From Macrostomum lignano (lineage: Eukaryota): 64,000 nt of DNA. Shown in pieces: positions 11,307-20,245 of this stretch. How positions within the stretch are numbered: the stretch's first letter is position 1; the number at the start of each line of letters is the position of its first letter. The stretch lies in contig NIVC01000345.1 of the NCBI GenBank assembly GCA_002269645.1, positions 1 through 64,000 of the forward strand. Direction: 5' to 3'. The translations under genes and the position numbers were made by a program. A model generated the notes under the pieces. The model was given only the letters and a program-made list of their open reading frames with translations, was not told the DNA's origin and did no database searches.

Positions 11307-14300
11307 TCAACAGGGATTAAGCTCAAATTCGCGCAATATTTTCAAGCCTTCCAAACAGCCGAAACGTTTCAGCGTTTCGGCCAGCTGCGACACTGTGAGG
11401 CCCCGATCTCGAATCAAGTTTAGCAGGCCTTGGTGCAACAAGTCGGCAGGATTTGTGTACTGGCGCTGCAGCAACTCCAAGTTGACAGCTGAGATGCCCA
11501 GATTCTCCAAAACCGGCCGATATTTGCTGCTCAAATCTTGAGAATTGCACAAACGTCGGGCCAGACCGGTTGTTGCAACAATTTCAGCATAGGAACGTTG
11601 CAACAATTCCACAATGTCACTCTGGTGCCCCGCTGTCACATGCTGGGACACTCTGACGGAACCGCTGCCACCGGTGGGGCGGTAAAATGACACCATTTCA
11701 CCTCCAACAGTTCCAATGCTCACGGTGAAGGCTCCACTTCTTCGCTGAGGGGTGTGTGTGTGTGTGTGTGTGTGCGGTCAGTGACAATTTGACCATCAGT
11801 GCCAATTCGACTATTAGCGACAATTAGACTGTCAGTGACAAAGTGAATACCAGTAAGAAATTGACTATCAATGACAATTAGACTCTGTCAGTGACAATTA
11901 GACTCTGTTAGTGACAATTTGGCTGACAGGGACAATTTGACCATCAGTGCCAATTCGACTATTAGCGACAATTAGACTGTCAGTGACATAGTGAATACCA
12001 GTAAGAAATTGAATATCAGTGACAATTAGACACTGTCAGTGACAATTTGACTAACAGTGACAATTTGACTATCAGTGACAATAGGATTGTCAGTGACAAT
12101 TTAACTGACAGGGACAATTTGACTATTAGGGACAAATTAAATATCAGTGACAAATTTAATATCAGTGACAATTAGACACTGTCAGTGACAATTTGACTAT
12201 CAGTGACAATTAGATTGTCAGTGACAATTTAACTGACAGGGACAATTTGACTATCAGTGACAAATTGAATATCAGTGACAGTTTGACTATCAGTGACAAT
12301 TAGACTTTGTCAGTGTCAATTTGACAATTAGTGACAATTTGACTATCAGTGACAATTTGACCATCAGTGACAATTTGACCATCAGTGACAATTTGACTAT
12401 CAGTGACAATTTGAATCAGTGACAATATAACAGTAAAAGCTTACCGATGATTGGCTGGATGAAACAGACTGGTCAACATTACCAGAGAGCCTTTCAGCCT
12501 CAGACACAGGTCGACCCTCAAACTGCATGGAAACAAGAAAGCATCGCAAGAATCATAGTATATCTTTGCACAAAAATGATTCATAATTCAGCAACTTACG
12601 TCTGGTTGATTAGACTGATCCATCGCATTGTCCAGCTGAAATTTAAACATTTGTAGGACTGGATGTGTTTAAGCTTTCGATGTATATCAGCTTTAGTAAA
12701 TAGACTTTGTAATAATTTTATGGATATTTAACACCTGTAGGATTGGGTGGGATTTTAACACCTGTGGGGATCGGATGGGATTTTAACACCTATGGGGATC
12801 GGATGGAATTTTAAAACCTGTGAAATCGGATGGGATTTTAACACCCTGTGGGGATCGGATGGGATTTTAACACATGTGAAATCGGATGGGATTTTAACAC
12901 CTGTGGCCTGTGGGGATTGGATGGGATTTTAACACCTGCGGGGATCGGATGGGATTTTAACACCTGTGGGGATCGGATGGGATTTCTGATACCATCACTG
13001 AGCCAACAACCCAAACAAACCTCCAGAACACTGAGCTCCTCTTCAACCGGACCAAGTGACACAGTCCTCGCTCGGACCTCAGCCGACGGAATGGTGTCAG
13101 CTGGTGGCAGCTCGCCCAGCTCATTCAGCACTCGGTTTCTCTCCCGCTCCATCTGGGTCAGGCTGCACATTCTCCACAGAGCGCTGATTTCGCTGAAAGT
13201 TGCCCGCTGCTCAGGCACCTGACAGGCCATTTTCTCCACAACAAGCTTAGTAATTTTTTGCAACTGTTCAAGATCTGCATCCCAGTTTCTCACAGGAATC
13301 TTATTAAAGAAACTATCGTCAACTAAGAGTTGAAAATCTCGAATGTGCTGTCCGATGCGTACTCTGCCTTTGAATGCTTCGATACGGTCCCCAATGACCT
13401 GACGAACGGACAGCTGACCGAATGCTTCGACTACGAACACAGCGTAGAGATACCTGTCGCCGAATATGTCCGGCTGTCTCAGTGGATCGTCGTAAGTTTC
13501 TGGCAAGCGACGTTCGACTCCACGCAGTCGCTCAAATGCTAACGTGTTCTGCGTGGCGATTGACTCCACTGTGCGTTTGGACAGGCCGAAATCCGCGATC
13601 TGGCGTGGTTGAGAGAGCGGCGCCTGTCTGTGCTGTCATTAGCATCTGACATTCTAGTCTGTGCTGTCGTTAGCATCTGACATTCTGGTCTGTGCTGTCG
13701 TTAGCATCTGACATTCTAGTCTGTGCTGTCATTAGCATCTGACATTCTAGTCTGTGCTGTCGTTAGCATCTGACATTCTAGTCTGTGCTGTCATTAGCAT
13801 CTGACATTCTAGTCTGTGCTGTCGTTAGCATCTGACATTCTAGTCTGTGCTGTCATTAGCATCTGACATTCTGGTCTGTGCTGTCGTTAGCATCTGACAT
13901 TCTAGTCTGTGCTGTCGTTAGCATCTGACATTCTAGTCTGTGCTGTCGTTAGCATCTGACATTCTAGTCTGTGCTGTCGTTAGCATCTGACATTCTAGTC
14001 TGTGCTGTCATTAACATCTGACATTCTAGTCTCTGATGTCATTAGCATCTGACATTCTAGTCTGTGCTGTCATTAGCATCTGACATTCTAGTCTGTGCTG
14101 TCATTAACATCTGACATTCTAGTCTCTGATGTTATTAGCATCTGACATTCTAGTAGTCTGTGCTGTCATTAGCATCTGACATTCTAGTCTGTGCTGTCAT
14201 TAGCATTTGACATTCTAGTCTGTGCTGTCATTAGCATCTGACATTCTAGTCTGTGCTGTCATTAACATCTGACATTCTAGTCTCTGATGTCATTAGCATC

Positions 14301-20245: not shown

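Follow-up and report, generated by a model that had tools for sequence, protein, structure and literature searches.

In innate immunity and regulated cell death, central positions are occupied by kinases that carry a death domain, such as RIPK1 and IRAK/Pelle, and little is known of how flatworms wire these pathways. RIPK1 consists of one kinase domain, a long linker and a C-terminal death domain (DD), while IRAK and Pelle have the DD at the N-terminus, ahead of one kinase. DAPK1 is an animal Ser/Thr kinase with a DD towards its C-terminus, where a single calmodulin-regulated kinase is combined with ankyrin repeats and a ROC-COR module. JAKs have no DD and place an impaired kinase-like domain directly N-terminal to a complete kinase in one chain (the JH2-JH1 order). 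In plant tandem kinases such as barley RPG1 and wheat WTK1/Yr15, two kinases, one of them typically degenerate, are joined as a result of duplication or fusion and are used in immunity. Here we describe a gene of the flatworm Macrostomum lignano, located on the minus strand between positions 20245 and 11307 of a 64,000-nt stretch (the window; positions 1 to 64,000 of contig NIVC01000345.1, assembly GCA_002269645.1), whose predicted product combines two kinase domains, KD1 and KD2, with a C-terminal DD.

The predicted protein resembles RIPK1 in its succession of kinase, long linker and C-terminal DD, and its last domain finds some of its best fold matches in DD structures of RIPK1 (6ac5, template modelling (TM) score 0.63-0.68). 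A beta segment with the sequence TVSIG also lies about 35 residues before the DD, where RIPK1 has its RHIM. It differs in having two kinase domains instead of one, in kinases that are no nearer to RIPKs than to FGFR, PLK4, PDK1 or JAK2 (E 1e-7 to 1e-10), and in lacking a Pfam RHIM match, the core being VSIG and not [IV]Q[IV]G. DD and kinase also share one protein in IRAK and Pelle, and the Pelle DD is the best PDB match of our DD profile (E 0.014); here, however, the DD follows two kinases at the C-terminus, and those kinases lack specific similarity to theirs. The JH2-JH1 order of JAKs is reproduced, but FERM and SH2 are absent, and KD1 and KD2 appear to stem from a local duplication (48% identity) unrelated to that of JAKs. 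What is shared with plant tandem kinases is the layout only: no homology was seen beyond the generic kinase fold, and the plant proteins have no DD and belong to receptor-like-kinase lineages of plants. As for DAPK1, neither ankyrin repeats nor a ROC-COR module were found here by Pfam.

With moderate confidence, we read the locus as a single M. lignano gene in which two paralogous five-exon kinase units and a DD exon were fused after tandem duplication, its product probably being assembled through the DD, with KD2 active and KD1 regulatory. The gene as first modelled has 13 exons, all bordered by GT-AG, that splice into an open reading frame of 2661 nt (886 aa), so that the initial annotation, which had 13 exons splicing in frame, proved right in its coordinates and borders. 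Its 886-aa product was right in reading frame and one residue short: in the public transcript-based model exon 9 begins at 14643 and not at 14640, which gives 887 aa from the ATG at 20245. The acceptor of exon 9 lies in a tandem cagcagcag run (14640-14648, minus strand), where public models pick a site 3 nt upstream in this locus, yielding 'STMQMGGG' with one extra Gln, and 6 nt upstream in the homeologous contig NIVC01001658.1 (L001), adding Q or QQ, respectively.

With that Gln, the spliced product is identical to residues 29-915 of GenBank PAA85129.1 (BOX15_Mlig009930g2, 915 aa), whose locus (positions 1307-33510 of NIVC01000345.1) matches the window base for base. In L001, the GenBank record has a two-kinase product of 894 aa that directly follows a further kinase gene, KD0, discussed below. 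To rebuild this product, we tried the alternative splice sites of that locus in turn: the same 13 exons, six additional 5′ codons and the exon-9 acceptor 6 nt upstream reproduce PAA47243.1 / PAA65386.1 (BOX15_Mlig005512g2) in every letter, and the 90% cluster of these two entries includes PAA85129.1. The sequence is therefore not undiscovered: the gene is already public in GenBank and UniProt as a hypothetical, uncharacterised protein. Precomputed Pfam domains of the public entries comprise kinase families only, and since standard annotation lists only kinases, the DD has been overlooked so far. A search of the literature and supplements for the locus tags and for a two-kinase plus DD architecture found no report; the layout, of which the initial annotation knew no animal example, is probably rare. 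As far as these searches show, what is new here is the recognition of the DD, of the tandem layout and of the fusion route.

The reading as one protein depends on the junction between KD1 and KD2. Its coordinates were given exactly in the initial annotation: exon 5 (17066-17563) ends at 17066 with the donor GAATCT|GTGAGT, an 80-nt intron follows (17065-16986) and exon 6 (16913-16985) starts at 16985 after the acceptor TTTTACAG|ATTGCT. Transcripts that read through the donor would meet an in-frame TGA (17047-17045), followed by an ATG at 17030, and the initial annotation had named messages that stop at the former and restart at the latter as a sign of two separate genes. Public RNA-seq-based models of four loci remove the intron instead. 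Across the junction, the annotated proteins from all four near-identical loci read ...QELNES|IAPD/E..., and the single open reading frame with two kinase-fold domains thus matches RNA-seq-derived public coding sequences in each of them; the claim that KD1, KD2 and the DD belong to one gene finds its support in this shared splice. The Mlig_3_7 annotation was built from StringTie/TACO RNA-seq assemblies and a mapped de novo transcriptome, not ab initio, and gene boundaries within its transcriptional units were set where spliced-leader and poly(A) sites had been mapped by experiment (PMC5730564). KD0 is annotated apart from KD1 in two sister loci, while KD1 and KD2 were never cut apart by this pipeline. 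The fusion intron differs in length between loci, with 80 nt in the window, 77 in L001 and 79 in both L003 and L004 (NIVC01003518.1). This drift in length without regard to frame argues that the intron is not coding, and in two of the loci the equivalent of ATG 17030 does not share the KD2 frame.

The same stretch of sequence gives some room for two cistrons, in which KD1 would end at TGA 17045 and a KD2-DD protein would come from a separate message, started either at ATG 17030 or at an ATG provided by a spliced leader joined to the 16985 acceptor. The stop codon follows 18 nt after the donor, and both here and in L001 the frame of ATG 17030 agrees with that of KD2. Moreover, operons occur in M. 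lignano, whose 35-nt spliced leader has an ATG at its end (PMC8629364); joined at 16985, this leader ATG would be in frame with KD2 (MIAPDVK...), while at the KD0 and KD1 acceptors it opens short dead-end frames only. Nevertheless, the intron is removed in the RNA-seq-based models from four loci, the pipeline that cuts at gene boundaries made no cut here, and in the two loci with a 79-nt intron the ATG is no longer in frame. There is also no poly(A) signal between the KD1 stop and the 16985 acceptor; on the minus strand, AATAAA is absent from the KD1 stop through to the gene end. Finally, a consensus cis donor only 80 nt upstream would be expected to outcompete trans-splicing, a principle cited in PMC8629364, which makes a trans-spliced KD2-DD unlikely as the main product. 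We consider the two-gene reading very unlikely as the main form, and a minor trans-spliced KD2-DD isoform may exist alongside the fused one. A 572-aa model starting inside KD1 (P0014) was considered as a natural KD2-DD isoform and rejected, as its late start is explained by a contig that breaks off 2.5 kb upstream of the gene.

Both kinase units of the fused gene are built from five exons. In the KD1 unit, exon 1 (20185-20245) holds the ATG at 20245 and the N-terminal lead-in (MAKLKN...SLIG), with an acceptor at 20268-20269, 22 nt upstream of the ATG; exon 2 (19738-19846) holds the glycine loop GKGSIASV and the beta-3 lysine (AVK), exon 3 (19020-19194) the helix C glutamate (VKEIALL) and the hinge, exon 4 (18773-18931) the catalytic loop HRDLSVDS, with Ser in place of Asn, and exon 5 the DFG motif and the C-lobe. 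In the KD2 unit, exon 6 encodes a linker and is homologous to the first coding exon of a single-kinase unit (...EESLIG). Exon 7 (16697-16814) carries the glycine loop GKGSFAVC and the beta-3 lysine (ALK), exon 8 (15343-15520) the helix C glutamate and the hinge, exon 9 (14482-14643) the catalytic loop HRDLAVDN, and exon 10 (13021-13599) the DFG motif, the C-lobe and the start of the linker. The linker continues through a micro-exon (exon 11, 12600-12635) and a Ser-rich exon (exon 12, 12445-12522) into exon 13 (11307-11744), where the TVSIG strand-turn-strand precedes the DD.

The kinase assignment is solid, with Pfam Pkinase (PF00069) matching in two stretches at 151 bits (cut-off 31.7, E 5e-44) and PK_Tyr_Ser-Thr (PF07714) at 146 bits; matches to DncV_C, DprA_WH and Haspin were set aside as noise or generic kinase signal. 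Read from the translation, KD2 has a complete catalytic set (GKGSFAVC, ALK, HEI, HRDLAVDN and DFG), whereas KD1 keeps the glycine loop, the Lys, the Glu, the HRD Asp and DFG with the metal-binding Asn replaced by Ser. The initial annotation had noted this loss and the completeness of KD2, and the motifs of both domains are the same in those sister-locus proteins that include them. KD1 is predicted to be weak or non-catalytic on this basis.

Whether KD1 matters at all can be approached through the comparison with L001. Between the two loci, KD1 shows 10 synonymous and 10 non-synonymous differences (ratio of non-synonymous to synonymous proportions, pN/pS, 0.27), KD2 has 4 synonymous and no non-synonymous ones, and exons 8-13 have zero differences, synonymous sites included. 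Judging from these counts KD1 is under purifying selection, perhaps less constrained than KD2. It could be argued that KD1 is a decaying passenger within a real fused transcript, the working protein being in effect a single kinase with a DD, like the 504-aa paralogue P0003. Such a single-kinase relative does exist, KD1 has lost its catalytic Asn, and KD2-DD is free of amino-acid differences between the homeologs, all 11 of which lie in KD1 or the linker. However, none of the loci examined interrupts the KD1 frame, its Lys, Glu, HRD and DFG are retained, and at 0.27 its pN/pS is not close to 1. As exon 8 and the exons after it lack synonymous differences too, their zero divergence may come from a recent tract of identity and not from stronger selection. 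Overall, we think a passenger KD1 unlikely, and prefer to see it as a maintained part of the fused protein.

The relationships of the two kinases point nowhere in particular. KD1 and KD2 are each other's closest relatives, and among PDB sequences their best matches range over EGFR, FGFR, STK25, PLK4, PDK1, RIPK2, JAK2 and CTR1, at E 1e-7 to 1e-10. The match to RIPK2 (E 1e-7) is on par with those to PDK1, JAK2, PLK4 and FGFR, in what is sequence matching and not phylogeny. An exhaustive HMMER search of 1.84 billion representative proteins with the KD2 C-lobe exon gave four matches at E ≤ 0.001: three below 1e-10, all from M. lignano, and a fourth, weak one to a repetitive 909-aa protein (E 3e-10). 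These matches single out neither RIPK nor IRAK nor plant tandem kinases. By sequence comparison, the kinases are an orphan family, known only from M. lignano, with no demonstrable tie to any of the three.

In the C-terminal domain, a death fold shows faintly in the sequence and more clearly in a structure model. Pfam Death (PF00531) is the top match of the last exon scanned alone, at a sub-threshold 17.3-18.1 bits (E 0.003-0.005), and covers profile positions 9-84 of 86. We then aligned three sequences: this gene, a decayed plus-strand copy in the window, and the C-terminus of P0003. Searched against 177,635 PDB sequences, the resulting profile has as its best match the Pelle DD mentioned above, over chain residues 22-100 of 108. 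A two-sequence profile found no match among PDB sequences, and the single trimmed sequence found three non-significant ones only (best E 0.13). The untrimmed three-sequence profile matched designed helical repeat proteins via its N-terminal part, a composition artefact.

The AlphaFold2 model of aa 781-886 (nt 11627-11310, followed by the stop TGA at 11309-11307) shows six helices after a low-confidence start, with a predicted local distance difference test score (pLDDT) of 83.7 and a predicted TM score of 0.72. In a Foldseek comparison of this model with the PDB, ranks 1-24 are all death domains (24 of the top 25), with TM scores of 0.6-0.7 and root-mean-square deviations (rmsd) of 2-3 Å. They comprise FADD (probability 1.00, TM 0.70, rmsd 2.8 Å), TNFR1, RIPK1, ankyrin, NF-kB p100, PIDD/RAIDD and Fas; CARDs are listed only below the death domains. 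The initial annotation had named failure of the last exon to model as a six-helix death fold as a point that would speak against it, and the model and its Foldseek ranks both show that fold. The assignment of a DD to aa 781-886 is thus made with good but not final confidence. An earlier model, computed for the whole last exon from two sequences, had a pLDDT of 52.7 and meaningless fold matches, and was discarded.

Upstream of the DD, the segment SGxxTVSIGxVxG (aa 745-765; 11700-11744, minus strand) is conserved in three family members and is predicted, with low confidence, to form a beta hairpin. Pfam returned no RHIM match at E up to 1; relative to the RHIM core ([IV]Q[IVLC]G) the segment has Ser for Gln, and even a relaxed pattern is fitted only by VSIG (aa 749) and VSLG (aa 690). 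In position the segment resembles a RHIM, and we mention it only as a lead.

The gene turned out to be one member of a local, lineage-restricted family of kinases, some with a DD, a point absent from the initial annotation. Immediately upstream lies KD0 (20980-24002, minus strand), a paralogous single-kinase gene of five exons which in our own model encodes 445 aa and ends in a TAA stop. Its exon phases (0, 1, 2, 0, 0) and intron positions are common with KD1 and KD2; it has HLD in place of HRD, a 100-aa tail with no domain match, and ATTAAA signals. On the plus strand, a decayed kinase-DD remnant (31111-32883) preserves a catalytic-loop exon in which HRD is lost (EGWDGEVTTDCVLIDEHLNAKV), a C-lobe (31376-31708) and, at its end, a DD-like part that shares 30% identity with the DD of the gene. 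No N-lobe exons were found in this copy, which is absent from the GenBank annotation. The family also includes the kinase-DD protein P0003 (504 aa). On another contig, PAA48300.1 (P0005) joins a kinase of this family to ankyrin repeats and to another kinase domain, canonical and unrelated, indicating that dual-kinase proteins recur in this family.

KD0 raises the question of whether the gene is larger still, with three kinases followed by the DD, an arrangement suggested by UniProt A0A1I8JDI5 and by the additional N-terminal residues of PAA85129.1. In NIVC01000345.1, KD0 has no separate GenBank annotation; the 915-aa coding sequence starts at an ATG (23510) inside KD0 exon 3, and the public model joins the donor of that exon, 23449, in cis to the acceptor 20267. 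An older ab initio model likewise merges pieces of all three units. Yet the 23449-20267 splice puts KD0 out of frame with KD1, and the KD0 frame stops after 17 codons. The ATG at 23510 is itself out of frame, and the ab initio model omits conserved exons. Because the join is out of frame, the 28-aa N-terminal extension of PAA85129.1 is best regarded as spurious. KD0 further has its own stop, tail and ATTAAA signals, and in two sister loci the annotation treats it as a gene by itself. To a three-kinase gene we give hardly any credence, and the two-kinase gene starting at 20245 is retained in what follows.

The arrangement of the units suggests how the fusion may have come about. The first coding exon of each unit has an acceptor just upstream, at 24013 for KD0, 20267 for KD1 and 16985 for KD2. 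Tandem duplication of kinase units would come first, after which, we infer, the GTGAGT donor that closes the KD1 unit began to splice to the pre-existing 5′ acceptor of the next unit. The captured acceptor would be of the kind used for an intron in the 5′ untranslated region or, in an operon-rich species, for spliced-leader trans-splicing. This splice would remove the KD1 stop codon and unite the two reading frames. The locus neatly illustrates one way in which new multidomain proteins may arise where operons and trans-splicing exist: the 5′ splice acceptor of a tandem duplicate was apparently captured by an upstream donor.

As to how the fused protein might work, its DD would drive homotypic assembly, with itself or with other DD proteins, into a helical oligomer. 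Oligomerisation would bring the kinase domains together, and proximity would activate KD2, which is predicted from its full set of catalytic motifs to be the active enzyme. KD1 would then act as a regulatory pseudokinase N-terminal to an active kinase, as in JAKs. A candidate upstream partner is a flatworm TNF receptor with a predicted DD: probable death domains are reported for TNF receptors of platyhelminths, one of them from M. lignano, and TNF ligands for free-living species (PMC7519573), which makes a link from receptor to DD kinase plausible. M. lignano is also reported to have a caspase with a kinase-like pro-domain (PMC11463336).

The cell-death or immune role put forward in the initial annotation is a possibility suggested by domain content only. 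A bolder version would make the protein an animal counterpart of plant tandem-kinase immune sensors, with KD1 as a decoy or sensor pseudokinase whose perturbation frees KD2, the DD driving a signalling or cell-death platform and TVSIG possibly serving as a RHIM-like aggregation motif. We regard this sensor as quite improbable. If true, it would place such a platform in a lineage reported to lack FADD and CRADD.

Several observations weigh against the fused, DD-assembled kinase that we favour. The Death score of the last exon is under the Pfam curated cut-off of 22.6, and the structure model of this domain derives from a three-sequence alignment. Support for the junction comes from annotated gene models and not from raw reads or long-read cDNA, and as the four loci are near-identical and reads multi-mapped, they do not amount to four independent confirmations. 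That every amino-acid difference between homeologs falls in KD1 or the linker would fit a relaxed constraint on KD1. Lastly, FADD and CRADD were not detected in platyhelminths (PMC11463336), so that the classical DD partners would be missing.

If the fused reading holds, the locus represents a lineage-restricted kinase family that gained a DD, one member of which also gained a second, partly degenerate kinase. M. lignano is amenable to RNA interference and transgenesis, and gene function is therefore directly testable. The practical weight is modest, given a single species, a reading from sequence and models, and a sequence that is already public.

Some further features of the gene and its copies complete the picture. 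AATAAA at 11164-11169 (minus strand) is the sole copy on that strand between 21000 and 10900; counted from 11169, it is 138 nt past the last stop-codon base (11307) and is likely the poly(A) signal of the fused mRNA. Minisatellite arrays fill six of the 12 introns (11778-12426, 12722-12985, 13626-14400, 14701-15300, 15644-16637 and 17639-18668), with periods of 18, 28, 31, 16, 33 and 35 nt and up to about 38 copies. The gene spans 8939 bp here and 8554 bp in a sister locus, a difference of 385 bp. In L004 (around 16990), a 1-nt deletion in exon 10 (GGGAG to GGAG) cuts the annotated protein at 672 aa and leaves the downstream DD exon intact; it could be a homopolymer assembly error or the mark of a disabled homeolog.

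Outside the kinase family, the window contains a single-exon open reading frame of 363 aa (6457-7548, minus strand), annotated as a gene in GenBank and with no Pfam match. Long coding-looking frames on both strands at 30239-30928, 33775-34576 and 55393-56271 are tandem repeats with Extensin-like low-complexity matches, and not genes. Finally, a GC-rich region (57-63%) at 46431-51402 on the plus strand holds the frames of a retrotransposon of the non-LTR (long terminal repeat) type, with an apurinic-type endonuclease, a reverse transcriptase and an RNase H.

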